Of a stretch of DNA of 64,000 nucleotides, positions 8,949-33,003 are shown one piece after another. The notes under the pieces were generated by a model. The model was given only the letters and a program-made list of their open reading frames with translations. It had not been told where the DNA came from and ran no database searches. Numbering within the stretch: position 1 is the first letter of the stretch; the number at the start of each line of letters is the position of its first letter. Made by a program: the position numbers and the translations under genes. The DNA lies in sequence record PQ464590.1. One strand, written 5' to 3'.

Positions 8949-10216
8949 ATGTAATACATCTTACTCTTCGTCGTCGCCGTTGTCAAGCGAAACATCAAAC
9001 AAATTTAAAATTTCGTGTCTGTGCTGGAGTAGAAATTCTGTGATCGCGATGTTATCATAAGGCGATAAGCCAGTGTTAGGACGTTCAGCACGGACAGTAC
9101 TGATCATTTTACCAACGAGATTATTAATCTCTTCCTCGTTCGCTTCAATGGCTTTCTTTGCTGAATCGTACAGCTTGCCTTTGTATTCGAATTTGGTAAC
9201 AGGTCGAATCTTTGCCATTTCTTTTTCCTCTTAAGGGTTAGGGTACTTCAGTACTGGAATACTGTTTCCCCTGGGGTGTGGCTGGTTACTTGACTTGATT
9301 GATTATACAGTACTGGCTAATGATGTCAATACCTTTTACATGAAATCGATCAGACCCATGTTAGATGCAATTTCGACGGCCTGGACTTTATCAGCGTCAA
9401 CTGGTACAAGATGTTTAAACGTCAACGCCAGATCACCGCAGAAGTAATAGAACGTGTTTTCGTTATAGGTGCAACGTTCGCCAGCGTCCTCAACCTCATC
9501 GCTATGGAAGAAAGGCATCCCTTCGTTGAAAACATATGCAACCGCGAGATCGATGTTATCCGCACGTACCAGGCGTTTAACAGTTTCGGTGTACTCACCC
9601 TGGCGAGCTTCCATAGTACAAACAAACAGGTTCAGGCCAGTAGCTTCGGTCATGGTTACGTTAGACATAATTTAATTCCTTAATGGTTGGTTAGTGTCGT
9701 TTCAATAAAGTTATTATGCCAGTACTATCAATCTATGTCAATAGTACTGGAGTAAAACTTTATGCGGTTTTCTTCTCTATAGTTACGTAAGTACTAAGAC
9801 CCGCGTACCAGTCTTTAAAGCCACGGCATTTACGCCCCGCTTCCTGGATGCTAACATAGAATGTGCCTGGCTCGCGTTCTCCGTTGTCAACTTCGGCGGT
9901 GAGTTTGGTAATGGCTTCAGTCAGTGCTACCTGGCAAGCCGCAACGTTTTTGACATCGTTAAAGATAGTACCGCAGAAGTTAGGAGTACCGTTGTAACGC
10001 ACACGAACGAAACCATCGGATACTTCACAGTTACGGAAAGAGATTTTGAGATCCATGTTAATTCACCTTAATGTTTGAGAGTAGAACCATTTCCCCTCTC
10101 GATGTAAACAATTATACAGTAATGAAGATCTATTGCAAGCATTATTTTAAAATATTCAGTACTTTTATTTGAATCTTTTCGCTTGACATACAACGCCAGT
10201 ACTGTATAATTAGTAC

Positions 10217-11767: not shown

Positions 11768-13124
11768 GATTCTTTCCTTAATAGTGTATGTCGTTTCAAT
11801 AAAGTAATTATGCCAGTACTATCAAACTATGTCAATAGTACTGAGTAATTATTTTAACGGTTGTAAATGTCATGAATCAAAATGTATGATTCACGTTTAA
11901 TGTGTGGATGGTAAGGCAAATAATGCTTATCCAGTACTGACATCAAATCCTGTTCGAGATCATTGATATCATCATAGAATGTTGGGGATACCAGGATATG
12001 CAATATATCAGTATCCACCAGCGTTGCATTGAGTTCCTGCACGTTCTCAATATCCGCATTACGCTTCCAATCTTGCATATTGGAAGTCAGCACGGTACGA
12101 ATGTCATTAGCGTTTAATAAAATATCCATTATTGATTCTCCTGTTTAAGTAAAGTAATTATGCCAGTACTATCAAACTATGTCAATAGTACTGTGATAAT
12201 TATTTTACCTTTTTATCCGTAGTAAAGTACATCGCGATCTGGCGGGTAGTCAGGCACGCCGCACGTAAAGCACGCTCAGTATAGGAGGCATGTTGGTTAA
12301 AGCGATGCATCCCCAGGCCGTTACCGATAGTAATGTTTTCAGTTGCTTTGTATTGTTTCTGATTCATTGCCGTACCCTCTTAAGTGTCGTTAAAGTAATT
12401 ATGCCAGTACTATCAAACTATGTCAATAGTACTGTGATAATTATTTTAATCCAGGATTAACAATTCAAACGTGTAAGTACTGTTTTGAACGCGGTACTCA
12501 TGACGGTTTCCCACTTCGCGGATCTTAATCAAACGCGTATGCGATACCAGGTTTAACGCCTCGCGTACATCCACCAGCGTTTTACAGTCACTGATATCTT
12601 TGTTGAAGTTATCAGAATCACAGACCAGTACTCGACGGGCATTTTTCAGAATCTTGTTAATCATTTTCTACTTCCTCTTAAGAGGGGAGGTTGTCTCCCC
12701 TATGCAAAACATTATACAGTACTGAGATTACTTTGCAAGTACTTTCTATTACTTTTCTGCGGAGTACTTGTAAAAGATATCAGTATTCAAAGCATCCAGT
12801 ACAAAGTTTTTAAAATCCATTTCCGCAAGGCTGTAACGCTCTGTGCAGAACTGTACTGGCGTATGCTTCCCGATTTGCTTCAGTACTTCCCAGGTGATAC
12901 CAGTCTCAGTCTCAGGCGTTTCACGGCGAATGATACAAGCGTAGTAAGAGATCAGTTTACCTTCCTGACCATAAGAGAACTCTTTAACTGTAGTAGATGT
13001 TTCTGTGTTTTCGAATAATTCCATTTTGTTACCCTCTTTAAGTTAGGCTTTGTTTGCCTGATGTAATACAGTATACAGTACTGAATAATTAATGCAAGTA
13101 CTTTCTCAAAATATTTTCTCTTTC

Positions 13125-19187: not shown

Positions 19188-19324
19188 GTTGTTTCCTTAA
19201 TAGTGTTGTTTTGCTTCAGTCCCTATATAGTACAGTACTGACAAAAGAATGCAAGTACTATTTTCATAAAAAAGATTTTGCATTTAGGTATTGACTCCAC
19301 CCACAGAACCTGTATAATTAGTAC

Positions 19325-19400
19325 ATAAGCCGGACACAAGGCACTAACCCACAGGGTGCGGAAAACCGTCCAGTACTGTAAATGATTATCATTCTCATTC
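19325..19400 (+). ncRNA. CCCACAGGGTGC element copy 9
   Basis: Promoter 19291-19318; core 19348-19359; first ~47 nt identical to copy 5. Confidence 0.6.
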
Positions 19401-19447
19401 GCCGGGTGTACCTCCGCACCCTGTGGGCTACGTCATTTCGCTGACTT
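19380..19447 (-). ncRNA. CCCACAGGGTGC element copy 10 (convergent with copy 9)
   Basis: Core 19416-19427; H1 GTCA/TGAC; promoter TTGCAA..TACAAT at ~19454-19482. Confidence 0.6.
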
Positions 19448-19864
19448 GTACTAATTGTACAGTACTGAAAAATTATTGCAAGCTTTATTTTCAGGGAGGG
19501 CGAACCCTCCCAGAGTCCCTACGCCGCGTTGTGAGGCGTTATTACAATCAGTGGTATATAGTCCCGTAATTCTAGCGTATCGCCGTCTGTGAGGGCTTCC
19601 AGGGCTTCCACGGTGCAAGCCTCGCACGGGTAGTACATGAGAACATCACCCATAGTCATGATAGTTCCATTAACTTTAAAGTACTGTTTAGAATATTTCT
19701 GTCGCATGATAATCATTCTCATTAACCAGGTTCGACTATCTCCCCTGTTCTGAAATTCATTATACAGTACTGAATTGTTATTACCAGCATATTTTTCACA
19801 TTCTTTTTGAATCTTTTTGCGTTTAGGGTATTGACATAAAATCGCAGTACTGTATAATTACTAC

Positions 19865-19940
19865 ATAGACGCGAGATGCGGGAACCCCAGGGGGTGCGGG
19901 AATATAACCATAAAGCGAAATGATTCTCATTCTCATTTAG
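19865..19940 (+). ncRNA. CCCACAGGGTGC element copy 11
   Basis: Promoter 19831-19858; H1 CGC/GCG; core variant 19885-19897. Confidence 0.55.
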
Positions 19941-19996
19941 CTTTTAACGGACGGACTCCCGCACCCTGTGGGCTTGTCCTGTTACGCCAGGATTGA
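19920..19996 (-). ncRNA. CCCACAGGGTGC element copy 12 (convergent with copy 11)
   Basis: Core 19961-19972; H1 TCCTG/CAGGA; promoter TTGCAA-17-TATAAT at 20002-20030. Confidence 0.6.
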
Positions 19997-21198
19997 AACT
20001 AATTATACAGTACTGAATTATTTTTTGCAAGTACTAAAAATAGTAGTAGACAATTCATTTCTATGTGATAAGATGATTCCAGATTTAAAACAATTCGATT
20101 CCAGATACTGCCAGGGAAAAAACAACCCTGACGCGGTAGGCTAGCCGCACCCCGCGATCTAGCAAAGGTAAATGCGAATCATTCCTATTTGCAAATGAGA
20201 ATCAATCTCATATGCGAACGAGTATCATTTGCAAATGCAGATGATAACCATTCTCATCTGGCTCAAAATTCGAGTCGGCTTTAGCTCGCCCTAAAGAAAG
20301 CCACCAGCAACCCTTCGTGTATCCATAGTACTGCCATAGTACTGCCATAATTCTTCAATTAATCTCAGTACTGAATGCTTAGCCAAACAGTACTGTTTAT
20401 GTTTTCCGATGGAGGTCAGAAATCTTATTAAGTGGTGAATCCAATTCACTATTCACAGTACTATAGGGATAGGTGGTCCCATGTTAATAGTACTACTATA
20501 GTGAACTGCACTTACTTAAACAACATTCGGGCAGTCATGAAGTTCACCGTGTTCATGAAAGTAGACAGTCCCTAGGCTTAGCAGTACTGGAATGATGGAA
20601 GGCACACACTTCAGTACTGAAAGCTTTCTTTTACTCTTTGACGATGTACACCAGGATATAACGTAGGAGCTTAGCTGGTGTGCCTATCTCCCTCGTAGGA
20701 CGCTATTATCACATATACGCGTGTCCACGTCAAGCTTTATTTTCAATAATGCAGTACTGAATTTTTGGGCCAGGCATGATCGAGATTTAGGATGGAGCAC
20801 CTTCCAGATTTTTGCTGGAGGGTCATTGACTTTTTTAAATTTTCAACTTTTTGCTGGAGGGTCATCGGGAATTTCCCTGAAGCCTGGTTCCCTCCTTTCT
20901 CCCCACCTCATTGTACACCCCTCTTGTAGTACTGTCAAGAAATACTTCTTGTACTCTGACGTTACAAGAAGATATAGTTGCAGGGGTGGTACAGTACTGA
21001 ATAGTACTTAAGAATGCTTTGCCGTGTTTACCTGTACTTCTGTACATATGTAATTATACCCATACATATAAAAATGTACAGTACTGTACGTATATACAAA
21101 TGTGCCTTTTACGGGGTGTTGAATCCTTTCGATAACGTTTTGTCCAGGGGGAATTTACCCCCTGTGTAAGATTACGTTCTCTTTCAGGAACTAACACC

Positions 21199-21903
21199 CT
21201 ATAGACCTGCTGCGTATCTAAGGATATGTAGTACTGTAAGTTTATCTCCCTGTGCTATTAGGGAATCTATTTTATGTTGTATCTGTATAGCTCTTTGATA
21301 CACGGGTATATAGTACTGTGTATGTGGAACTATAGTATCTAATTGGAATTGTAGTTCCTCTGGTATTTCTTTGTCGGTGATATTATACGTTTGTACTATA
21401 TCATTGAGTTCTTTATCTAGTTCTCCTTCACTGAATTGGGGATGAGATATTAGTCTGAATTTGAATTGCTGGGATTGTTGGGAATGTCTCATCCTTCTTA
21501 CTGATGAAGCTGGGATTGTGATACCTTCGTTATACAGTACTACATAGTCATTGAATGTATCTTCTACTGGATCGTATCCCATATGGATTGCGTGTACTTT
21601 ATTGTTCGAGAATACTATGAGGCACGGGACATTATTGATAGTACAGATAACATCTATTACATATGGAGCTTTTGTTCTTAGGGAGTATTTTGTTTTTCCT
21701 TGTTCTGCATATGATGTTGCTAGAAGGATTTGGACGCCGAGATATTTGGCGTACTGTTTAGTTCTTTTATCTGCGTTATAGATAATATTAGTATCTACTG
21801 ACTTTACGTTCTTTACGTACATAGGAGCTTTACCTGGAGTTGTATGTCTCCGGTTCGCATTGAAAGTACGTTGGTAATGTTTTTGTAGGTTAGATAGTTT
21901 CAT
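21199..21903 (-). CDS. hypothetical protein
   Basis: 234-aa AT-rich ORF; probable paralog of 21904..22557. Confidence 0.75.
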   Translation of the reverse strand: MKLSNLQKHYQRTFNANRRHTTPGKAPMYVKNVKSVDTNIIYNADKRTKQYAKYLGVQILLATSYAEQGKTKYSLRTKAPYVIDVICTINNVPCLIVFSNNKVHAIHMGYDPVEDTFNDYVVLYNEGITIPASSVRRMRHSQQSQQFKFRLISHPQFSEGELDKELNDIVQTYNITDKEIPEELQFQLDTIVPHTQYYIPVYQRAIQIQHKIDSLIAQGDKLTVLHILRYAAGL

Positions 21904-22557
21904 TTATTGTTCCGTGTTAGTATAGTTCAGTACTGTGCAGATGTTTAGGAGTTCTAGTACTGTGATATCTTTGTGAATGTTCCTGGCGATATGTAGGCGT
22001 AATTCGTTCGCTGAGATAAAGATGTGAGGATCGGGAAGAACGAATTCGAGTTGTGCGATTTCTTCTTCTGAGTACGGTTTATCGTCTTGAATATGTTCTT
22101 GTAGTACTGGTATTAGTTGTGTTGATTGTTCGGAGTTCCTGATGAATTTGCCGTGGCTTTGGTCATGCATAATATTAGTACTGTACGGATGTAGTTCTAT
22201 ATCGTCATCCCCGAACATATATGGGAAGTATTGTTCTTTGGTACAATGTGTGACGATGCCATACAGATCTGACTCATCGAACATAAGTACTGTTGGGGTG
22301 TTATGGATATAGATTTCCATATCGAAAGTTTCGGGCATAGTACTGGAAGTATTGAGGGCATGTTCTGATTGTTTTACGTCCACGCGGAAGATGTTTGCGT
22401 GTTTAGTTTTCTGGTACTGTTGTAGTACTTTAGTGAGTTTATCGTTCCCGAATTTCTTATGCGGCATGTAGTGGAAGTTCGAGGATGTGGTATTGAATTC
22501 TTTGCGTAATTTTTTGAAGTGCAGGTGGTAGTGCAGTGAGTGTTTAGAGAGTTTCAT
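21904..22557 (-). CDS. hypothetical protein
   Basis: 217 aa; promoter TAGACA-17-TATAAT at ~22588-22616 with a 14-bp palindrome TCACAGTACTGTGA in the spacer. Confidence 0.75.
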   Translation of the reverse strand: MKLSKHSLHYHLHFKKLRKEFNTTSSNFHYMPHKKFGNDKLTKVLQQYQKTKHANIFRVDVKQSEHALNTSSTMPETFDMEIYIHNTPTVLMFDESDLYGIVTHCTKEQYFPYMFGDDDIELHPYSTNIMHDQSHGKFIRNSEQSTQLIPVLQEHIQDDKPYSEEEIAQLEFVLPDPHIFISANELRLHIARNIHKDITVLELLNICTVLNYTNTEQ

Positions 22558-22629
22558 ATAGGATTCCTTTGGGGTTAATTTTGCATGATTATATCACAGT
22601 ACTGTGATGATGTCTAGTGGTGTTTTGGG

Positions 22630-22635
22630 TAAATA
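22630..22635 (+). promoter_or_regulatory. T4-type late-promoter-like TAAATA (also 27080-27085 and 31818-31823)
   Basis: TAAATAC(G/T)(T/G)TATATT recurs ~30 nt before the first gene of each plus-strand unit; no -35 box. Confidence 0.65.
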
Positions 22636-22667
22636 CGTTATATTCATTTTTATATGGAGATTTTTAG

Positions 22668-23531
22668 ATGATACCTTTTGCAAGAATGTTACAGTACGGA
22701 AATGTAGTTTCTGTGATTAATAACATGGGTACACGTACCTTGATAACTCCTTCACCGTCGCCTACTGCGAGATTTTCTTTTGGGTATACAACATTAGGGG
22801 ATTCTGCGTATTTGTATGGTGGTGCGGTAGTTGGTTCAGATTATAACAATGAATTTTGGAGATTTGACAGTACTACAGAGACTTGGACACAATTACAGAG
22901 TGGTTTGCTTTCTATGCATGGTTCAGGGTTAGCTGCTTACAATGGTAAGGTATATATGTTCGGTGGGAACACTGGGACAACGGTTAATAGGTTTTTCATT
23001 TATGATATTGCGAGTAATACATGGACTGAGAACACGACGAGTATAAATCCCCCGACTGCAAGGCATCATTGTCGATTTGTCAGTACAGGTAATGGGAAGT
23101 TATATTTGTGGGGAAGTTTGAATGGTTCTGAGTTATATTCGTATGACATTGCGAGTAATACGTGGGTGAAATTAGCTTCCAGTACTATTCAGAATTCATT
23201 AGCTGGGGATATGGCGACTGATGGAACTAATTTGTACTGTTCTGGGACATCTAATCAGAAATACAATATAAGTACTGGCACCTGGAGTACAATGGGTGCA
23301 TTAGAGGGTAGAATGACTTACAGTACAATAGAATCGCGTTTGTACTGTGTGAACAGTGAGCGTTTATATCAATATAGTACTGGATTAAATTCATGGGTAC
23401 AGGTTGGTGATAACAGTGCTATTGGTATTTCACGTGGGGCATTATATTCATTTGTTAGTTCATCTAAAGTACTGAGTGCATTTGGTTCAGTAGGCAGTAC
23501 TGCTAACAGTAGTCAATATAAATTTATATAA
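22668..23531 (+). CDS. Kelch-repeat beta-propeller with MIPF tag
   Basis: Repeats of YLYGG/YMFGG...YD..S.TW. Confidence 0.85.
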   Translation: MIPFARMLQYGNVVSVINNMGTRTLITPSPSPTARFSFGYTTLGDSAYLYGGAVVGSDYNNEFWRFDSTTETWTQLQSGLLSMHGSGLAAYNGKVYMFGGNTGTTVNRFFIYDIASNTWTENTTSINPPTARHHCRFVSTGNGKLYLWGSLNGSELYSYDIASNTWVKLASSTIQNSLAGDMATDGTNLYCSGTSNQKYNISTGTWSTMGALEGRMTYSTIESRLYCVNSERLYQYSTGLNSWVQVGDNSAIGISRGALYSFVSSSKVLSAFGSVGSTANSSQYKFI

Positions 23532-23541
23532 GGAAACGGAG

Positions 23542-24750
23542 ATGATACCTTTTGCAAGAATGATACAGTACGGGAATGTTGTACAAGAAAATAAGATAGT
23601 TAAGATTGATAATAATGTTGCTGCTGGGGTGTTGTTATTATCTAGTACTGGTGATTTATATGGTTTCGGTCCTAATGGTGCATATCAATTAGGGTTAGGA
23701 CATAACAATGCGGTGACTACACCGACATTATTATTCAGTGGTGTTAAGAATTTTTGGAGTGCTGGAGGTGATTCGGTACTACAGACTACGGATGATAAAT
23801 TTTATGCTGCTGGGGTTGGTAATATAATTGACGCGGCGAACACTTCCAGGCAGGTATGGACTGATATAACTTCTGTCTTTTCTGCTGTTGACATATCAGA
23901 TATTAAGAAAGTAGATATAAAGGCGAACTGTTTAGCAGTACTGACAAATTCGGGGAATTTATATTGTGCAGGATACAATGGTTATATGGCATATAATGGT
24001 ACTGCTACAGTTCGGTACGCGAACTTAACATTAGTTCGTTCTGATGTAATTGATATTAAGGGCAATTACAATTTAGGTTTATTTACATTAAGGACTAATG
24101 GTAAAATATATGGTGGGGGATATAATACATCTGCCCAGATGGGTTCAAACGGTGGTGATTCACAGAATCCTAATACAGTAGTATATTATTCTGGGATTAC
24201 AGGGTCAAGTGATTGGTCTTATGCAAATTTAGATTGTTTATACACATGTAGGACTGGTACATTTTTGAACAACGCAAAATTAGTAACTGGTTCTGATACC
24301 TCTCTAAAAATGCGTGTAAGTGGTACTGGTACTGATGGTTCCTTATCTGGGGTAACTGGTAAATGGTCGGGATTCCAGACTGCATGGGGTTCTGAAAACA
24401 TACTACAAGCTGAAAACATTTTAAAGGGATTTGATAGTAGTGCTAATACTACATCTCCATTTTTACTTACTAGTGATGGTATATGGACATGTGGTAATAA
24501 TGCATATGGTCAGCAGGGAACAGGTGACGTATCGAACAAATTAATTTATACTAGAAATAGTAAAATAGATAGTATTGTTAAAGATTATAGTAAATTAACT
24601 ATTTTTAATGCAGCATTTTATACTTCGTACTTCGTATATGATAATAAATTATACGGGACTGGTGCGTTAGGTTTTGCCAATGCTGGATCGTTAATACCTG
24701 GTCACAGTACTGGGTCTAGTGTATATGTAGAAATACCACTACCATTTTAA
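23542..24750 (+). CDS. RCC1/BLIP-II-like beta-propeller with MIPF tag
   Basis: G.LY..G.N..GQLG.G repeats. Confidence 0.8.
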   Translation: MIPFARMIQYGNVVQENKIVKIDNNVAAGVLLLSSTGDLYGFGPNGAYQLGLGHNNAVTTPTLLFSGVKNFWSAGGDSVLQTTDDKFYAAGVGNIIDAANTSRQVWTDITSVFSAVDISDIKKVDIKANCLAVLTNSGNLYCAGYNGYMAYNGTATVRYANLTLVRSDVIDIKGNYNLGLFTLRTNGKIYGGGYNTSAQMGSNGGDSQNPNTVVYYSGITGSSDWSYANLDCLYTCRTGTFLNNAKLVTGSDTSLKMRVSGTGTDGSLSGVTGKWSGFQTAWGSENILQAENILKGFDSSANTTSPFLLTSDGIWTCGNNAYGQQGTGDVSNKLIYTRNSKIDSIVKDYSKLTIFNAAFYTSYFVYDNKLYGTGALGFANAGSLIPGHSTGSSVYVEIPLPF

Positions 24751-24762
24751 GGAGAGAGAGAA

Positions 24763-25890
24763 ATGATACCGTTTGCAAGGATGATACAATACGGGAATGT
24801 TGTTACCCCAATAGAAGAATATGACAGAAGTATGCAATCTCAATATAATGCGGTATATTATTTGCATCGTAATGGGGATTTATATTCGTACGGGAATAAT
24901 AACTTAGGTCAATTGGGCGTTGGTGATGCTGCGAACCGAACTGTATGGACAAAAGTACTGCAAGATGTTAAAAAGTACTGGTTAGGTGTTCATGGATGTT
25001 TAGCAGTAAAGACCGATGGTTCATTGTGGTACACTGGTAGTGCTACTGCGTTTCCACAGTTAGGTTCAACAACATATGTGTTTATTAATGTGGACTCATA
25101 TTTTTCTGGTGTTGGAATTGATAGTGCCATGATTCGAGATGTTATGATAACAGATAGTATTAAGGTTATAACAACTGATGGAAGATTTTTATATTGTGGT
25201 TCAAACGGGTCTAGACAACTAGGTACTGGTTTAACAGCTAACGTTCCAACATTAACATTTGATCCTAATTTTACAAATATAGTATCTATGGGTGGAGCAT
25301 TTGATAACACAGTACTGATATTATCTAATGGTGAAGCATGGCAAGCGGGTGCTTATCGTAATAATACAGGCGGGAGCACGAACCGAAATCCATTTGCTAA
25401 AGTTCTTGATGGTGTAAAATATTGCGGTTCTGCATTTCAAAGTACATATTATTTCATGTTAGATGGGACAATCAAAGTTACTGGATATAATAGTTATGGT
25501 CAATTGAGTACTGGTAATACTACAAATACACCAGAGGGTTCAATGGTACAAATATCACATACGTACGATCCAAATTCGGATATTAAAATTTATACATCTT
25601 TATCTAACAATGCTGGAACATCACCAGTACTGTATCATAATGGATTATTATGGAGATGTGGGAGTAACTCAACAGGACAGGTAGGTATTGGTTCAGTTGT
25701 ATCACCACAAACACTGTTAGTTAATCCTTTAATGACAAACGTTCCTAGTGTTAAATATTTCAGTGCTGATAATATAAGATTCTTTGTTATTGATAATGAA
25801 TATAAATTATATACATGTGGGTCGGTGTCATTAAATGGTGTTCCTAATTTGGATACATTAACATACGCTGGCGTACAGCCGTGGAATTAA
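24763..25890 (+). CDS. RCC1/BLIP-II-like beta-propeller with MIPF tag
   Basis: GDLYSYGNNNLGQLGVG and related repeats. Confidence 0.8.
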   Translation: MIPFARMIQYGNVVTPIEEYDRSMQSQYNAVYYLHRNGDLYSYGNNNLGQLGVGDAANRTVWTKVLQDVKKYWLGVHGCLAVKTDGSLWYTGSATAFPQLGSTTYVFINVDSYFSGVGIDSAMIRDVMITDSIKVITTDGRFLYCGSNGSRQLGTGLTANVPTLTFDPNFTNIVSMGGAFDNTVLILSNGEAWQAGAYRNNTGGSTNRNPFAKVLDGVKYCGSAFQSTYYFMLDGTIKVTGYNSYGQLSTGNTTNTPEGSMVQISHTYDPNSDIKIYTSLSNNAGTSPVLYHNGLLWRCGSNSTGQVGIGSVVSPQTLLVNPLMTNVPSVKYFSADNIRFFVIDNEYKLYTCGSVSLNGVPNLDTLTYAGVQPWN

Positions 25891-25900
25891 GGAGAGAGAT

Positions 25901-27040
25901 ATGTTACCATTCGCAAGAATGATACAGTACGGAAATGTTGTACAGGTAAAGGATATAGTTGATATACAAGTATCCAGAACTCACGCATTAGTACTGGATA
26001 GTGATGGAAACTTATGGGGTCGTGGAACTAACACGAACAACATATTAAACCACACTGGAATGAGTAATACTAGTACTTTTGTATTAGTTGATACTGGAGT
26101 GACTGCAATGTTTTGTGGTTATATCCTTACCCTGTATGTAAAGAACGGGGTATTATATAGAATTGGTTCATCAATGACATGGGACACCGGAGCGGTTCTA
26201 GTACCGACTGCGGTTTCTATTCCATTTTCTGCTGCATCCATTAAGAAGATTCAATGCGTTACCAGTACTAGTATAATGATACTATTGAATGATGGTACTA
26301 TGTGGTACAAAGGTGCAGGTACTAACGGTAGATTTGGTAATGGCAGTACTGCATCTGTTAGTACATGGACATTAAGTACTGTTACTGATATAAAAGACAT
26401 ATATCATTGTGTATGCTTTTTAGAAGGTAGTACAGCGTTTAGTATCTTATTGAAGAATGATGGTACTGTATGGGGAGCAGGTAGTGTAGCACTGAATACT
26501 ACGTCTAATACATTTAGATTCAATTCATACTTAAGCACTGCAACGTGGTTCCAGCGTACAATACAGAGTGATATAGTTCAGATTGCGGCTGGATCAGGTA
26601 GTAGTGTTTTATTCCTGGACAGTACTGGTGTATTGCGTGGAGATGGAAATACCAATGGTGAATTAAGTGGGAATACCACGTCTGGTACGTACAATAATAC
26701 ATTAATGGCTAACGGTGTGAAGTTATTTGGTCTGAACTGGGAAAGTTCATATTATGTACAGACTGCTACGCCTACGGTATTAAATGCTGGTGGACGAAAT
26801 TATAATTTATCGTCCTCATTCACTTCACCTGGTTCGTATGTAGGTAGAGTCAGTACTGATTTATCAGAGGAGATTAAGGCAATATATACAACCAGGGGTG
26901 TTGATATTGGTTTTGGTATTACTTATATTTCATTACAGGGTAATAACGTAGTAATGGGTGGTAACAGTACTGCTTATCAGTTAGGTGTGAATACTGGGAA
27001 TATCAATTTAGTTCAAAGTAACTTACCTGGTGTAAGTTAA
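25901..27040 (+). CDS. RCC1/BLIP-II-like beta-propeller with MLPF tag
   Basis: HALVLDSDGNLWGRGTN repeats. Confidence 0.8.
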   Translation: MLPFARMIQYGNVVQVKDIVDIQVSRTHALVLDSDGNLWGRGTNTNNILNHTGMSNTSTFVLVDTGVTAMFCGYILTLYVKNGVLYRIGSSMTWDTGAVLVPTAVSIPFSAASIKKIQCVTSTSIMILLNDGTMWYKGAGTNGRFGNGSTASVSTWTLSTVTDIKDIYHCVCFLEGSTAFSILLKNDGTVWGAGSVALNTTSNTFRFNSYLSTATWFQRTIQSDIVQIAAGSGSSVLFLDSTGVLRGDGNTNGELSGNTTSGTYNNTLMANGVKLFGLNWESSYYVQTATPTVLNAGGRNYNLSSSFTSPGSYVGRVSTDLSEEIKAIYTTRGVDIGFGITYISLQGNNVVMGGNSTAYQLGVNTGNINLVQSNLPGVS

Positions 27041-27044
27041 CAGG

Positions 27045-27077
27045 ATGCCTGGTACTTTTGGGTACTGGGCATTTTTA
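27045..27077 (+). terminator. intrinsic terminator
   Basis: ATGCCTGGTAC/GTACTGGGCAT 11-bp stem plus TTTTT; near copy at 31782-31814. Confidence 0.75.
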
Positions 27078-27110
27078 ATTAAATACTGTATATTAAATGA
27101 GGGGATTTAT

Positions 27111-28304
27111 ATGATACCTTTTTCAAGGATGATAAAATACGGGAATGTTGTTGACCCTATTAGTACTGATAATATTAAACGGGTGGATGCGAATTCATCA
27201 GGAGGTATGGGAATATTGTACAACAATGGTGATTTGTGGGTTCGTGGAACTAATAACTTTGGATGTTTAGGCACTGGTAATAATTCTCCAGTTACTTCAT
27301 GGACGTTAGTTCGTTCAGGCGTAGATGACTTTTGTTTAGGTGTTACTGGAATGTTGGTAAAGAGTTCCGATGGTAAATTATTATATAATGGGCGTGACTC
27401 AATTTTGAATAATAATACAACATTTTTACAATTTGCTGATTACACCGCACAATTTACGCCATCTGGTTTTTCGGTTCATAATATTAAGCAGATGCAGGTA
27501 GGACAATATAGTGTATTAATACTAATGAATAATGGGGTATTATTGGCATTTGGAAGAAATAACTCAGGAGAATTCGGTGACGGGTCATCTAGTAGTACTT
27601 CAGGGTTGGCAATCCGACAGGTAGCGGCTAATGTTGATAAAATCCAATTATACAATTTAAATTCTGGATATTTAAGTGATGGAAAATTCTATCGTGCTGG
27701 ATATAATGCTAACTATGCGTTAGGTAATGGAACTACTAGTGATATACGGACTTTTCAGGTATATAATCCACCAAGTGGTGAAAGTGCAATTATAGATTTC
27801 AACATAACAAATTACGGTACACGATTATTAACCTTATCAAGTACTTCAGGATATAACATGTATCAGTGTGGTATTAACACGAGTTATCATTTAGGGGTAA
27901 ACAGTACTACTGCTACTTTTGTTATTCCAACATTTAGTACTATGCAATCTATATTGCCATCATCAAATATAGAGTCGCACGCACTTAATATAAAGGGTCA
28001 AGTTAGTTTAGGGGATTTAATATTGCCTAAACAGAATCCTAATTCTTATTTCTGGGTTAGTGGTGATAATAGAAATGGTGCATTTGGTACGGGTGATACG
28101 GCTAACATTTCTGCGTTGTCAATGATTGGTGGTAAAGGTTTACCTAATAATATTGATTATAGTTCTGAATATGTACATGTAGTTTCTTGTTCATTTAATT
28201 CTAATTTTATACTCATGAACAATACCATTTATGGGTGCGGGGTGAACTCTGGATTCGGTTTAAATAGTACAACGTTTGTTAGTTTAGGAACATATCCAAC
28301 TTAG
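27111..28304 (+). CDS. RCC1/BLIP-II-like beta-propeller with MIPF tag
   Basis: Start reassigned to MIPFSRM after GAGGGG RBS; RCC1-like repeats. Confidence 0.8.
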   Translation: MIPFSRMIKYGNVVDPISTDNIKRVDANSSGGMGILYNNGDLWVRGTNNFGCLGTGNNSPVTSWTLVRSGVDDFCLGVTGMLVKSSDGKLLYNGRDSILNNNTTFLQFADYTAQFTPSGFSVHNIKQMQVGQYSVLILMNNGVLLAFGRNNSGEFGDGSSSSTSGLAIRQVAANVDKIQLYNLNSGYLSDGKFYRAGYNANYALGNGTTSDIRTFQVYNPPSGESAIIDFNITNYGTRLLTLSSTSGYNMYQCGINTSYHLGVNSTTATFVIPTFSTMQSILPSSNIESHALNIKGQVSLGDLILPKQNPNSYFWVSGDNRNGAFGTGDTANISALSMIGGKGLPNNIDYSSEYVHVVSCSFNSNFILMNNTIYGCGVNSGFGLNSTTFVSLGTYPT

Positions 28305-28316
28305 GAGAATAAAAAA

Positions 28317-29468
28317 ATGATACCTTTTGCGAGGATGATAAAGTACGGGCAAGTTATCCAACCATTGCCTGGAGTAAAGAAGATATTAGCTGCGTCTTCA
28401 TGGTGTATGGTGCTATATGAGAATGGTGATTTATATGCACGTGGGCGGAATGCTGGAAGTACATTTGGTGATGGTTCAGCATCTAACACAGACGTTATTG
28501 GTGATTGGAAATTAATACAGTCCAGTGTCAAGGATGTATGGAGTTCATTAGGAACAACGTTCTGTATTACAATGGACAATAGAGTGTTAAGTTCAGGAGC
28601 AATACGTGGATTAACTGGTGGAACTGCTAATAGTACTCAAATATTCACTGACAGAACTAGTATTTTTACGGATGCTGGTTTAGCAGTACAAGATATAGTT
28701 GATATGTCAGTTGGCCCGTACGATGTATATGCATTGACAGTTTCAGGTACAGTATATAGTGGTGGCACTAACTTTTCAGGCCAGCACGGTACTGGAAATA
28801 CCACAGCTAGGGCATTTGCATTGAATACGAATTTTGTGAATGTTAAGAAGATCAGTTCATATGGTGCACAGGGCGGAACCTTCTGGTACTTAGACACATC
28901 TAACACATTATATGGCACCGGAAATGGTTCTGTTGGTCAGTTATTATCGGTATCCGGCACTGTCAGTACTAAGAGAGTTTTGAGTACTGATGTAATTGAT
29001 TACAGTGCGAATATTAACTGTTTCTTTATTATAAAGAGTGATGGTTTATATTGTGCTGGTTCTCAATTCAACGGACAATTAGGTGATGGAGTTAACAGTT
29101 CTAACATAGGTAATGTCGGTAGGACTACATTATTTAAGCATGAACAATTTACATCAGCCCCGTCATATGTTTATAACGATACATATATGACTGTTGTTCG
29201 TTATAATGATACTTGGTACGTATGTGGTAACGTAGCTAAGAGTGGTTATGGTCAAAATAATAGCTCCGCGTCTTTTGTAGTTAACAGTACTACAGTACCG
29301 AAAGTGTCTGATCCTAAATGGGCAATTGGCAATAATAACTCTTATGTAATATCGGAGTTCGGGGTATTACATGGTACTGGTACATATTCAGCAGCTACTG
29401 ATTTGTTACCTGGCTATACTGTTGCCCAATATACGTTTGTACCATTAAGCACGGCAGGGATACAATAA
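28317..29468 (+). CDS. RCC1/BLIP-II-like beta-propeller with MIPF tag
   Basis: GDLYARGRN and GQLGDG repeats. Confidence 0.8.
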   Translation: MIPFARMIKYGQVIQPLPGVKKILAASSWCMVLYENGDLYARGRNAGSTFGDGSASNTDVIGDWKLIQSSVKDVWSSLGTTFCITMDNRVLSSGAIRGLTGGTANSTQIFTDRTSIFTDAGLAVQDIVDMSVGPYDVYALTVSGTVYSGGTNFSGQHGTGNTTARAFALNTNFVNVKKISSYGAQGGTFWYLDTSNTLYGTGNGSVGQLLSVSGTVSTKRVLSTDVIDYSANINCFFIIKSDGLYCAGSQFNGQLGDGVNSSNIGNVGRTTLFKHEQFTSAPSYVYNDTYMTVVRYNDTWYVCGNVAKSGYGQNNSSASFVVNSTTVPKVSDPKWAIGNNNSYVISEFGVLHGTGTYSAATDLLPGYTVAQYTFVPLSTAGIQ

Positions 29469-29483
29469 GGAGATTAAAAAAAA

Positions 29484-30620
29484 ATGATACCGTTTTCTAG
29501 ATTAATAAAGTATGGTAACATACGAGAGGTTAAAATACAAAAAATTGATACGACGAACACAAGTACGGTCGTACTATTTGATAATGGTGAACTTTATGGC
29601 TTCGGTCAAAATTCCTTTGGTGTTCTTGGGTTGGGACATACTGATATAGTATTTGATATGACACTATTGAATACGGGCGTTAGTGACGTATGGTGTGCAC
29701 AGTCTGATATATTAATTAGAAAAGGTGACAACTTTTATTATGCAGGTGCTGGTCAAATTATTGGTAGTACTAGTGTATCAAGTAGCGTTTTTGTTGATTG
29801 TACATCGATGTTTGGAACTCTCAATAAGGGAAATATCAAAAAAATACAGTTAAGTTTAGGTACATTAGTACTAATGAATGATAATAAGCTTTATGCTTGT
29901 GGTTTCAATAATGGTTTTTATGGTAATGGCTCATTCAACCGAGTTTCAGCACTAACACAGGTTCAAACTGATGTTCTTGACGTGAAGACTAACAGAAATG
30001 GTACAGCCTGGATAAAGAAAACTGATAATAGACTTTATGCTTGTGGTCAGAACAGTTCATATCAAACAGGTGCAGGTACTAGTTCAACGGTAGCTTCCTA
30101 TACTTTAATATCTAAATTTACTACAGTTGATTTAGATAATTTATCAGTAGCTGATAGTACTGCATTTTATTACACTGGGGCTGCTTTATATGGTTCAGGA
30201 ACCAAAATGGGAAATGGAAATAACACCAGTACTTCACAGAACTTTAATGGTTCCGTTGTTTTTAATTTAGCTAACTATGTTAGGATGTATAGTACGAATT
30301 GGGGAACGACCGCTCCATTTATTATGGGTTCTAGTACTGGTAATGGTATTCCTGATTCATTAAATTTCTGTGGTTCAAATACATACGGTGCATATGGTAC
30401 GGGTACTACTGGGACAGTAACTGCATTTACACCTATGAGTACCTTGAATTCGGTACTGTCTGATTTTACAAAGATTACGCATATTCAATCCAACGCATAT
30501 GGTACATATGTGGTGGCTGATAATAAATTGTACTGTGCAGGGAATGCTGCTGGTGGTGCGGTTCCAGGAGTTAACACTGGTAATCAATTATCATTTATAG
30601 AAGTTGAGTTACCCATATAA
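29484..30620 (+). CDS. RCC1/BLIP-II-like beta-propeller with MIPF tag
   Basis: GELYGFGQNSFGVLGLG; closest in pattern to 23542..24750. Confidence 0.8.
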   Translation: MIPFSRLIKYGNIREVKIQKIDTTNTSTVVLFDNGELYGFGQNSFGVLGLGHTDIVFDMTLLNTGVSDVWCAQSDILIRKGDNFYYAGAGQIIGSTSVSSSVFVDCTSMFGTLNKGNIKKIQLSLGTLVLMNDNKLYACGFNNGFYGNGSFNRVSALTQVQTDVLDVKTNRNGTAWIKKTDNRLYACGQNSSYQTGAGTSSTVASYTLISKFTTVDLDNLSVADSTAFYYTGAALYGSGTKMGNGNNTSTSQNFNGSVVFNLANYVRMYSTNWGTTAPFIMGSSTGNGIPDSLNFCGSNTYGAYGTGTTGTVTAFTPMSTLNSVLSDFTKITHIQSNAYGTYVVADNKLYCAGNAAGGAVPGVNTGNQLSFIEVELPI

Positions 30621-30629
30621 GGAGGGATT

Positions 30630-31775
30630 ATGATACCATTCGCAAGAATGATACAGTACGGGAATAATATTCCCAGGGCTGCAAGAATACAAACAGTAAA
30701 AACATTACAGTACAACGTGTTTATTTTATTGGATGATGGTAGGTTATATGGTCGTGGACGAAATCAAAACTATCAATTAGGTACTGGTGTAAACACACCA
30801 ACTATAGTTGAAGAATGGACTTTATGTTTAGAGAACGTAAAGGAATTTTGGTGCACTGGCTCAGTTAGTGGTATATTGGCTGTAAAGTACGATGGCACTT
30901 GGTGGAGTACTGGACAGCAAACCTACAGAGGTATTACAACTATACACCAAACCTGGACCGATGTTACGTCTATTTTTAGTACTGTAACTAATACATATCA
31001 GAAAATAGTAATTGGTAGTGGTGTTACACTATTACTAACTAACACTGGTGAATTGTACAAAATGGGATATAATGTAAATGGTGAAGTTTTCACTGGAAAT
31101 GCAACTACACGGGTTACAACATTAACATTAACCCCTGAAGTTAATGTTGTTGATATTGGTGCATCAATGGATACATCATCATTTGTATTATACGCAGATG
31201 GTACATTGAAGGGTTCTGGTAATAATGGCTCTTGGACTAGTGGCTCTACACTAGTAACCACATTAACTACAATAACGACTGGTGTATTAAAGATTAACTC
31301 TGAGAATTCTTATAATGCTGTGTACGTACAAAAGAGTGATGGTATATATGTTGCAGGTTCACAATTCATGGGCCAATTGGGTGATGGTGTAAATGGTTCT
31401 GCCAGTACTTCACGCTCTATATACAAGATTCCAGTAGCTACGAATCCAGGGGAAGTAGATTACATTGGTTCTTCTAACTACGTAGTACATATGCGTAGTA
31501 CTAGTGGTGTGTGGTATTTTGCTGGTCGTGATGGTAGACAGGCTGGTAATGGAATAACATCTAGTTCAGCAATAACAACATATACTGCGTTGCCAAACAT
31601 CGGAATGAACAGTACTGAAATGTCACACACGTATTTGATTACATTCGTTGTAATTGATGGCGTTTTATATGGCTCAGGAAATGGAAGCACGACTTCTGGA
31701 TTAGGAGTTATACCATATGTAGAAGCTGGTGCTGGTAGTACTGGTTTATTCAAGATGATAAACACGCCTAGTTAA
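30630..31775 (+). CDS. RCC1/BLIP-II-like beta-propeller with MIPF tag
   Basis: GRLYGRGRNQNYQLGTG repeats. Confidence 0.8.
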   Translation: MIPFARMIQYGNNIPRAARIQTVKTLQYNVFILLDDGRLYGRGRNQNYQLGTGVNTPTIVEEWTLCLENVKEFWCTGSVSGILAVKYDGTWWSTGQQTYRGITTIHQTWTDVTSIFSTVTNTYQKIVIGSGVTLLLTNTGELYKMGYNVNGEVFTGNATTRVTTLTLTPEVNVVDIGASMDTSSFVLYADGTLKGSGNNGSWTSGSTLVTTLTTITTGVLKINSENSYNAVYVQKSDGIYVAGSQFMGQLGDGVNGSASTSRSIYKIPVATNPGEVDYIGSSNYVVHMRSTSGVWYFAGRDGRQAGNGITSSSAITTYTALPNIGMNSTEMSHTYLITFVVIDGVLYGSGNGSTTSGLGVIPYVEAGAGSTGLFKMINTPS

Positions 31776-31848
31776 GTATATATGCCTAGTACTTCAACAG
31801 TACTGGGCATTTTTAATTAAATACGTTATATTATAAATGGAGGTACAG

Positions 31849-33003
31849 ATGATACCATTTACAAGAATGATAAAATACGGAAGAAATATAGTTACAAATG
31901 ATATTAAGAAGATGGTAGCCAGTACGAACAGTATTGCCCTTCTATATAATAATGGTAATTTATATATGAGGGGTGAGAACTCATTGTCATTATGGGGGAC
32001 TACTGATGCAAATAATAAGTTAGATTGGACATTAGTTCTTACTGATGTACAAGATGTATGGATTGGAGCATATCATACAATAGCACTAATGAATGATGGT
32101 ACGTATTATTGTTGTGGTTATGCTAGGTCGTTAGGTGTAGCTGGAAGTAATAGATTGTGGGAACCATATGCGTTGCTTAATAATCTTATTAGTTCAACTG
32201 GTGATACTGTGAAGAAAATAGAGTGCGGTGTACAGGGTTCTCAAATTCTAATGAGTAATGGGGATTTATATTTTACTGGATTTAATAATGCTTCATGTAT
32301 GGCTCCCTCTTCATTTGGGACCACAGTAACTTCGTTTATTAAATCACTTACGGGTGTAAAAGATGTTAGTTATAATATGAACGCAACGATGGTAATAACA
32401 AATGATAATTTACTTAGAGTTGTGGGTACATCAGATAACCAAAAACTAGCAACACCCTCTAATGGAACAGTATTGTCTGTATGGACAACTAAAAGCTTAC
32501 CTACTGGTTACACATATCCGGTTAGCCTATATGAAGCTTATAGGTCCACATATATATATTGTGCATCGGATAGTTCAGTGACCGACACGGCATTAGTTGG
32601 TGCAGGTTACAACGGATATAATCAGTTAGGGCAACCAGGAACCTTCAACACACCACTAGCAACTTACACTGCTGGTGCAACTAATATTAAAATTACATCA
32701 TTTGGTACTGGCTGGTGGCCTACTGCGTATAGTACTATGTGTACTGATGGTTTACAACTATATTCTGCTGGTCAATTGGGTGCAGCTATGGGCAGTGCGA
32801 CGAACAAGACCACTGGGTTTACAGCGATCCCATTTGAAGCAGGTGCAAGTGCTAGTACAGTTGATGAGTTTTGTATGGCTGGTTCAGCAACAACAACTGG
32901 AGTTACTATGATGAGGTCTGGTAATACTGTATTCGCATGTGGTGTAGCAGCTTGGTTGGGGACTGATCATTTTAATTTAGTTCCAGTATCATTACCAGAA
33001 TAA
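31849..33003 (+). CDS. RCC1/BLIP-II-like beta-propeller with MIPF tag
   Basis: Start reassigned to MIPFTRM after GGAGG RBS. Confidence 0.8.
   Translation: MIPFTRMIKYGRNIVTNDIKKMVASTNSIALLYNNGNLYMRGENSLSLWGTTDANNKLDWTLVLTDVQDVWIGAYHTIALMNDGTYYCCGYARSLGVAGSNRLWEPYALLNNLISSTGDTVKKIECGVQGSQILMSNGDLYFTGFNNASCMAPSSFGTTVTSFIKSLTGVKDVSYNMNATMVITNDNLLRVVGTSDNQKLATPSNGTVLSVWTTKSLPTGYTYPVSLYEAYRSTYIYCASDSSVTDTALVGAGYNGYNQLGQPGTFNTPLATYTAGATNIKITSFGTGWWPTAYSTMCTDGLQLYSAGQLGAAMGSATNKTTGFTAIPFEAGASASTVDEFCMAGSATTTGVTMMRSGNTVFACGVAAWLGTDHFNLVPVSLPE

Follow-up and report, generated by a model that had tools for sequence, protein, structure and literature searches.

Transfer of phage T5 DNA into the cell stops after 8% of the genome has entered, and the cause has been unclear for decades. 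Fur, MetJ, and DnaA polymerize cooperatively on repeated short units of DNA; Fur and MetJ need a small corepressor and coat 100 to 200 bp. Here, we describe a cluster of Fur-box-like sequences near the predicted edge of the direct terminal repeat in a jumbo myovirus of the Rak2-like "group 2.2" (PMC11780129), namely, Erwinia phage Hallingskeid (PQ464590.1; 366,158 bp), whose host is Erwinia aphidicola. The window analyzed comprises bases 1 to 64,000 of this record (100% identity), and coordinates refer to it unless another phage is named. In T5, the injection-stop signal has been placed by Davison in Repeat Region 3, with a first-step-transfer shear point at ~9618 and eight paired DnaA boxes as candidate elements; the word Fur is absent from that paper (bioRxiv 10.1101/866236).

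The T5 injection-stop region is the closest described counterpart of the Hallingskeid locus. Each is a big untranslated region, rich in repeats and palindromes and conserved above the neighboring open reading frames (ORFs), and each lies at one boundary, predicted in the case of Hallingskeid, of a long direct terminal repeat. Both hold an array of Fur-box-like 21-mers ~0.5 to 0.7 kb inside the repeat end, toward which host-type promoters transcribe, and boxes for a host protein had already been proposed as functional elements of the T5 region. Paired DnaA boxes and A1/A2/dmp are T5 features without a Hallingskeid counterpart, whereas the promoter-clamp-box modules and the P3 leader described below are Hallingskeid features without an evident counterpart in T5.

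Seven Fur-box-like sites cluster in gene-free DNA

Seven Fur-box-like 21-mers occur within 880 bp of gene-free DNA (19,380 to 20,259), near the predicted terminal-repeat edge. They were scored with a 21-bp matrix built from the boxes of the jumbo phages RaK2 and Munch only, so that scoring of Hallingskeid is not circular. The sites and the small ORF among them are as follows (promoters P1 to P3 and modules M1 and M2 are listed further below).

19380..19400, Fur box 1, in the M1 loop at ~+55 from P1; 28.1 bits; 20 of 22 bases as in the E. coli ryhB operator
19519..19722, minus strand, small ORF, 67 aa in full length and 62 aa if begun at the ATG at 19707
19704..19724, Fur box 2, over the start codon(s) of the small ORF; 23.5 bits; 1 mismatch to the 7-1-7 motif
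19918..19938, Fur box 3, in the M2 loop at ~+55 from P2; 24.5 bits
20170..20259, Fur-box array with boxes at 20170, 20193, 20210, and 20239; 23.1, 25.4, 19.1, and 26.1 bits, respectively

Scores range from 19.1 to 28.1 bits, the box at 20210 being the weakest of the seven. With the same matrix, Markov-simulated 64-kb sequences gave a mean maximum of 13.9 bits (highest, 20.3), and a piecewise scan of the whole 366,158-bp genome yielded a maximum of 17.2 bits outside 19,380 to 20,259. Consensus searches allowing up to three mismatches returned 2 matches to the 19-bp Fur consensus GATAATGATAATCATTATC (0.08 expected) and 15 to the internal consensus AATGANAATCATTCTCAT (0.53 expected), 11 of which fell within 19,376 to 20,257; the 7-1-7 motif TGATAATnATTATCA was found at six sites in 19,377 to 20,256. 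The box form is a perfect 7-1-7 palindrome, TGAGAAT-C-ATTCTCA, and positions 19706 to 19723, within box 2, read ATGATAATCATTCTCATT. Box 3 has a homologous loop box in Munch, BF, and Yen9-04. The spacing of the array (23/17/29 bp) is identical in RaK2, and relatives keep the boxes one for one.

A first-pass annotation of the window had reported a dense cluster of about six such boxes in an ORF-poor region and no similar sites elsewhere. The cluster is real, although it counts seven boxes, not six, and every box sequence quoted was recovered where it had been placed (19706 to 19723, 20171 to 20189, 20193 to 20211, 20241 to 20258, and, on the reverse strand, 19381 to 19402). [quoted passage not shown] The small ORF, first given as 19519..19707, exists but extends to 19722, the ATG at 19707 being internal. 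It is missing between the modules of RaK2, and neither it nor the neighboring genes belong to an informative family, the match of the ORF to a PHROG being weak (E = 5e-4). An Rfam scan of 17 to 23 kb gave nothing beyond a chance CrcZ fragment (E = 0.8), and a tRNA search of the 64-kb window found none.

The boxes match Fur operators of E. coli

The bidirectional intergenic regions fepB-entC, fepA-fes, and fepD-entS of E. coli are under Fur control. E. coli loci served as positive controls for Fur specificity. A matrix made from phage boxes only placed its top 8 hits on 22 kb of E. coli K-12 (entD to entH) all within these three regions, and it scored the best natural ent/fep site at 17.6 bits, versus 19 to 28 bits for the Hallingskeid boxes. 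The matrix derived from the seven Hallingskeid boxes alone had its best hit in the ryhB locus (21.9 bits) at the operator just upstream of the ryhB start, to which 19381 to 19402, read on the reverse strand, is identical at 20 of 22 bases; the near-identity of this site to the ryhB box had been pointed out in the first-pass annotation. In the negative control, 12 kb of the E. coli met region, scores peaked at 10.6 bits. No Fur homologue was detectable by tblastn over the Rak2-like phages. The identity of the motif as Fur boxes, also proposed earlier, is strongly supported on these sequence grounds, and binding by host Fur is quite probable, assuming from the conservation of Fur across Enterobacterales that the host protein has enterobacterial specificity.

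The boxes share with the classical Enterobacterales Fur operators (ryhB, fepA-fes, fepB-entC) the 7-1-7/19-bp motif and, as in natural Fur clusters, the overlapping arrangement of clustered sites (PMC2189734). They differ from these operators in number and setting, with seven boxes in 880 bp of non-coding DNA, no iron-related gene downstream, and positions off the -35 and -10 elements. A reading as classical operators was rejected because no box lies over a -35 or -10 element; they lie instead on the transcribed side, at ~+55 from P1 and P2 and at +90 to +180 from P3. Fur boxes in the cargo of temperate phages, such as those of the sit operon in lambdoid coliphages (PMC6969025), likewise place the host Fur motif on phage DNA. 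There, a single box serves a cargo operon in a lysogen, whereas the virulent jumbo phage Hallingskeid has its boxes arrayed in the terminal control region, and no cargo gene accompanies them.

Outward promoters and conserved leaders precede the boxes

Three strong promoters of the host sigma-70 type, all pointing outward, precede the boxes; downstream of each come a structured leader and one or more boxes, in this order.

19291..19318, plus strand, promoter P1, TTGACT-16-TATAAT (11/12), pointing to the repeat boundary
19326..19427, plus strand, module M1 leader, with a 5' hairpin (GCC/GGC) at 19329-19342, a 14-bp clamp at 19348-19361/19414-19427, and a 52-nt loop
19831..19858, plus strand, promoter P2, TTGACA-16-TATAAT (12/12), the most widely conserved piece, with matches in 71 phage records
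19866..19972, plus strand, module M2 leader, with a 5' hairpin (CGC/GCG) and a clamp at 19885-19900/19958-19972
20047..20074, plus strand, promoter P3, TAGACA-16-TAAGAT with TG (9/12 plus TG)
20104..20140, plus strand, P3 leader, with near-invariant flanks GATACTGC and ACGCGGTAGG around a hairpin at 20112-20130
20263..20272, plus strand, post-array motif CTCAAAATTC (ACNCCCAAAATTC in relatives)

Modules M1 and M2 share one design, in which a 5' hairpin is followed by an inverted-repeat clamp of 14 to 16 bp that encloses a loop of 52 to 57 nt with a single Fur box. Their leader RNAs fold at -45.5 and -45.1 kcal/mol, respectively (z = -4.1 and -4.25 versus shuffles). The clamp core GGGTGCGG/CCGCACCC is near-invariant in ten modules from six genera, its inner pairs being lost in BF and Yen9-04, and the stem of the 5' hairpin covaries (GCC/GGC, CGC/GCG, CGA/TCG, and GGAG/CTCC). 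Promoters homologous to P1 are present in RaK2, Muenster, and CBB. At P3, a promoter-like -35/-10 pair is retained in all 10 aligned phages despite sequence turnover. The P3 leader, which the four-box array follows directly, keeps the flank consensus GAT(A/T)C(T/G)GC and (A/T)CGC(G/T)G(A/T)AGG, and its hairpin shows compensatory covariation, with seven different stem sequences among ten phages and a fold in all of them; the unit is therefore under selection as a transcribed element. The motif AC(N)CCCAAAATTC comes after the array in all genera and, in Asteriusviruses and CBB, takes the place of the Fur box in the clamp loops. An inward promoter at 20938-20910 (11/12) was considered, but by eye it is not conserved in EJP2 and was not used. 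Extra promoter-plus-clamp modules lie deeper in the repeat of two relatives: one in Muenster at ~5 kb (extracted locus L003, 3000-3110), which has no right arm and ends in a canonical terminator, and one in CBB at 3.8 kb (L015, 2482-2600), which is co-directional with the early genes.

Relatives carry met-box arrays at the homologous position

Pieces of the 19.2- to 21.2-kb region match 71 jumbo-phage records. RaK2 has three promoter-clamp-box modules and a five-box array, and Munch has one module and an array; an IMG/VR scan for CAGTACTGTAAATGANNATCATT matched RaK2 itself only. Asteriusviruses (vB_Ec-M-J, EJP2, ph0011), Eneladusviruses (BF, Yen9-04), and the Mimasvirus CBB have the same P3 leader, followed by 14 to 26 tandem 8-bp units. 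These units sit at the position homologous to the Hallingskeid Fur array, where no Fur boxes are present. Their consensus, AGACGTCT, is exactly the MetJ met box; in one phase the units agree with it at 5.4 to 5.8 of 8 positions, compared with ~1.5 for the remaining seven phases. In the extracted loci, the arrays span L011 765-916, L014 1769-1976, L010 673-808, L009 5-116, L018 685-812, and L004 3489-3640.

Natural met operators hold 2 to 5 boxes. When a matrix of 2 to 4 tandem phage units was run over a 12-kb E. coli region, all 10 of the 10 best hits fell in metJ-metB and upstream of metF. The met arrays of the relatives score at least 30 bits, and CBB, which was outside the training set of the matrix, scores 35 bits; in contrast, Hallingskeid has no met-box array, and the Fur-type phages reach 10.7 bits at most. 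The tandem AGACGTCT-like units of the relatives thus resemble the MetJ operators metJ-metB and metF in their 8-bp repeat and strict register, and differ from them in length. No MetJ homologue was found in the phage records. Because the met arrays occupy the homologous position, recover real operators, and occur in phages lacking a detectable MetJ homologue, one slot holds predicted operators for either of two host corepressor-dependent repressors.

The array lies just inside the predicted end of the terminal repeat

Two further features define the right-hand edge of the locus.

20784..20866, plus strand, sub-terminal repeats, with GATTTAGGATGGAG once and TTTTGCTGGAGGGTCAT twice
20967..20977, boundary of the direct terminal repeat and genome end as predicted by homology, ...AAGAAGATA / TAG...

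In relatives with a mapped or PhageTerm-predicted repeat start, the matches fall on the opposite strand, 0.3 to 1.4 kb inside the left end, and the region homologous to 19.2 to 21.0 kb lies 0.3 to 1.8 kb from the repeat starts of Muenster, vB_Ec-M-J, CBB, and fEgEco12. Phages with the region near the left end are Muenster, vB_Ec-M-J, fENko-Kae01, CBB, and fEgEco12, the last having ends confirmed by restriction digests (PMC13070987). The word AAGAAGATA occurs in Hallingskeid at 20,968 to 20,976, EJP2 has the same junction internally, and the Munch and BF records terminate in GAGAAGATA. GC skew also flips at ~21,000, from about -0.04 to between +0.17 and +0.31 (21,001 to 33,000), which coincides with the predicted boundary. 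On account of the left-end position in relatives, the junction words of Munch, BF, and EJP2, and this flip, we infer that the ~20-kb direct terminal repeat of Hallingskeid ends at ~20,976. MAFFT misplaced the terminal AAGAAGATA words somewhat, and the boundary was called from direct reading.

The cluster lies ~0.7 to 1.6 kb, and the four-box array ~716 bp, inside the predicted boundary. The virion would accordingly hold the array twice, near the genome tip and at the internal junction of repeat and unique DNA. Duplication of the repeat within the record was rejected, as the right end is not a copy of the left end; the deposited record appears to be a permuted single-copy assembly with one copy of the repeat. 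The sub-terminal repeats GATTTAGGATGGAG and TTTTGCTGGAGG are kept in EJP2 and Munch, ~100 to 250 bp from the boundary or record start, and are candidate terminase or end-recognition sites.

Similar arrays occur in unrelated phages and at the T5 injection stop

The Hallingskeid Fur array has a match in the Phapecoctavirus ECO340P2, where six boxes of 21 to 33 bits (12,379 to 12,539; L026, 1442-1602) occupy part of an 870-bp gene-free gap, behind a promoter-like stretch and a leader that were both read by eye. With this array as the query, 469 records were matched; rV5-like phages and many T5-like ones are among them, with E. coli, Salmonella, Klebsiella, Citrobacter, and Cronobacter as hosts. 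A design of promoter followed by box is common to Hallingskeid, RaK2, Munch, and the unrelated ECO340P2. Met-box-like arrays were also found elsewhere, close to record starts or genome ends, in T5-like Vibrio phages (Pontus, 468-603, 17 units) and in the T7-like E. coli podophage PGT2 (38 to 117 bp from the left end).

In T5 itself (AY587007.1), the phage Fur matrix returned scores of 25.9, 18.7, 12.5, 33.3, and 23.8 bits across 9472 to 9631. These boxes (9472 to 9640) are the annotated copies 1 to 4 of direct repeat C (DRC) and palindromes E to I (palE-I) of Repeat Region 3, and they span the estimated shear point at 9618. The repeat of T5 ends at 10,139, ~500 bp beyond the array, and rightward pre-early transcription runs at the array.

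A cis-acting block at the repeat boundary is the favored reading

Three functional ideas had been put forward with the first-pass annotation, namely, a Fur sponge, an iron-responsive operator region, and an analogue of the T5 injection-stop signal. The last has been the most productive, although none of the three is proven. The T5 stop region does contain the same boxes, scoring up to 33.3 bits, in the same geometry relative to the boundary, whereas the DnaA boxes and A1/A2 of T5 are lacking in Hallingskeid. The operator idea is right in that every outward promoter is followed by one or more boxes, but these lie at +55 to +180 and not over the -35 or -10 element. The sponge, discussed below, is conceivable but weakened.

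In the reading that we favor, and to which we give a probability of roughly 35%, Fur carrying iron loads the boxes into a cis-acting block and thereby gates events at the boundary of the repeat. In an iron-replete cell, dimers of Fe2+-Fur would coat the boxes and form a filament of ~90 bp on the array. Such a block could hold back RNA polymerase in cis at the border of repeat and unique DNA, and possibly also transcription-coupled or second-step DNA entry, as a counterpart of the Fur-box array within the T5 injection-stop region. Relatives would reach the same end with MetJ met boxes, loading taking place when iron or S-adenosylmethionine (SAM) is plentiful. This reading is suggested by the fixed position inside the boundary, by the promoters aimed at the arrays, and by the covarying leader. 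T5 and T7-like phages destroy or silence host DNA and end host gene expression early, and the recurrence of the arrays in phages of this kind also argues for an action in cis.

Several points weigh against such a block. Both the binding of Fur and its gating role are read from sequence, and the Hallingskeid repeat boundary is predicted by homology. The boxes lie off the -35 and -10 elements; Fur is, to our knowledge, not an established elongation roadblock, and a protein on DNA that is already internal is no obvious physical brake on DNA still entering. Two-step DNA transfer is known from T5 but, as far as we know, not from the Rak2-like group. The clamp loops of Asteriusviruses and CBB lack a Fur box, which is hence not essential to those modules. 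DnaA-box pairs of the T5 type are absent: TTWTNCACA occurs 4 times in the window (11.4 expected), and only one of these copies falls in the region. Homologues of A1/A2/dmp were not found, tblastn of the Hallingskeid genome giving best E values of 0.64 (A1) and 0.82 (A2). A literature search found no link of jumbo phages or T5 with Fur or MetJ boxes, decoys, or titration, most subscription journals being outside its coverage.

Titration of the repressor is an unlikely alternative to a cis-acting block. With two copies in each virion genome and further amplification through replication, the boxes would here titrate Fe-Fur and derepress iron uptake, and in the MetJ-type relatives, the met/SAM regulon would be derepressed, likewise feeding phage growth. 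Such a decoy would suit the higher scores of the Hallingskeid boxes relative to the best ent/fep site under the same matrix, their location away from promoters, and their inclusion in the terminal repeat of relatives with mapped repeats; moreover, the alternative array targets the feedback repressor of another nutrient regulon. In the Fur titration assay, a multicopy plasmid with one Fur box already gives a positive result. There is also a plausible demand, the 366-kb phage encoding iron-dependent NrdAB, NrdDG with a radical-SAM activase, and SAM-dependent DNA methyltransferases (PMC11780129). Known titrating clusters (datA of E. coli for DnaA, synthetic decoy repeats [PMC3322331], and Fur titration plasmids) have many strong sites independent of any regulated promoter. 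The array would resemble them insofar as its own strong sites lack a regulated promoter, and its copy number is likewise raised by replication; it differs from them in its fixed position and its upstream transcription unit. Measured against the definition of a decoy as high-affinity sites without a regulated target, the sites are strong, yet each lies downstream of a promoter in a conserved unit, and a pure decoy needs neither a fixed position nor an upstream promoter nor a covarying leader. The same arrays occur in T5, which degrades host DNA early, and met arrays lie close to the end of a T7-like podophage; phages of both types destroy or silence host DNA within minutes, which would make derepression pointless. 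Furthermore, a cell contains thousands of Fur dimers, against which 7 to 10 sites per copy count for little until late in replication. We know of no phage example of a titrating cluster of binding sites.

A part in packaging or terminus architecture, in which a filament of host protein 0.5 to 0.8 kb inside the terminase cut helps recognition, initiation, or termination, is quite unlikely. IHF at lambda cos provides a precedent. The distance to the boundary is constant (~716 bp here, ~500 bp in T5, and 700 to 900 bp in Munch, BF, CBB, and vB_Ec-M-J), arrays adjoin the ends of the podophage and of T5-like Vibrio phages, and the host protein used is interchangeable, all of which an architectural role would accommodate. 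It would leave the upstream promoters and the covarying leader unexplained, and dependence on a corepressor (Fe2+ or SAM) would be odd for an architectural factor.

It is similarly improbable that Fur does not use the boxes and that the likeness is incidental, with a phage protein as the ligand or with the palindromes acting as RNA or single-stranded DNA hairpins in the P1 to P3 transcripts. The boxes are indeed perfect 7-1-7 palindromes within well-folding transcripts, Asteriusviruses retain the module although its clamp loops hold no Fur box, and hundreds of hypothetical phage proteins are possible binders. However, the two types of array each recover, in E. coli DNA, real operators of a separate host family; both recur in unrelated phage families; and no Fur or MetJ homologue was found in these phages. 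Finally, chance clustering of AT-rich Fur-like words, conceivable insofar as non-coding DNA such as this is often AT-rich, is excluded by the excess of internal-consensus matches (15 versus 0.53), by the presence of seven sites of at least 19 bits in 880 bp and none in the other 365 kb, and by the one-for-one conservation of the boxes at equal spacing in relatives.

Implications for phages with long terminal repeats

The Hallingskeid array may be described as a host-factor site array in a phage terminal control region, and such arrays are possibly a general device of terminal-repeat phages. A broader and rather doubtful extension of the cis-acting block is that gammaproteobacterial phages with long terminal repeats share interchangeable arrays of host-protein operators (Fur, MetJ, and perhaps DnaA) just inside the boundary; the loaded arrays would set a pause in entry or expression, the T5 stop signal would be partly a Fur-box array, and entry would be tied to iron or SAM status. 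If Fur does load the arrays, virulent phages of at least three unrelated lineages would read or exploit the host iron sensor, and others the SAM sensor, through DNA sites and not genes, a type of host interaction that escapes genome annotation. The repeats at the T5 stop point resemble textbook Fur boxes, so that this old problem is now open to simple experiments. For jumbo phages, the arrays suggest a possible way of handling the 20-kb terminal repeat, with its early genes, as a distinct opening stage of infection. Infection dynamics would then depend on iron or methionine status, which would be relevant to phage therapy and biocontrol.

Other features of the terminal region

A reading of the region as a replication origin was set aside for want of initiator or iteron evidence, no dedicated analysis having been made; in T5, origins are placed near mid-genome (bioRxiv 10.1101/866236). 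Chi (GCTGGTGG) occurs in 11 minus-strand copies between 389 and 20301, against ~0.3 expected, and in four plus-strand copies between 26786 and 33308; Munch and vB_Ec-M-J have an inverted Chi pair in the terminal region. These copies may protect the genome ends from RecBCD. Just past the predicted repeat boundary, within the block of strongly positive GC skew, three successive plus-strand genes (23542-27040) are annotated as "regulator of chromosome condensation" (RCC1-like repeats). A repeated TTTGTAAAGAnnTGTAAAGA lies upstream of the outward promoters of RaK2 (L002, 2085-2105, 2935-2955, and 3300-3320) and, in the unrelated ECO340P2, likewise precedes the Fur array (L026, 1320-1345). Finally, the palindrome CAGTACTG is present in 110 copies in the window, versus 1.3 expected, and in 412 copies in the genome. 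It is often found directly upstream of a TATAAT -10 element or a Fur box (examples are at 19233, 19371, 19460, 19765, 19845, and 20008) and is probably a phage-specific promoter or regulatory element.

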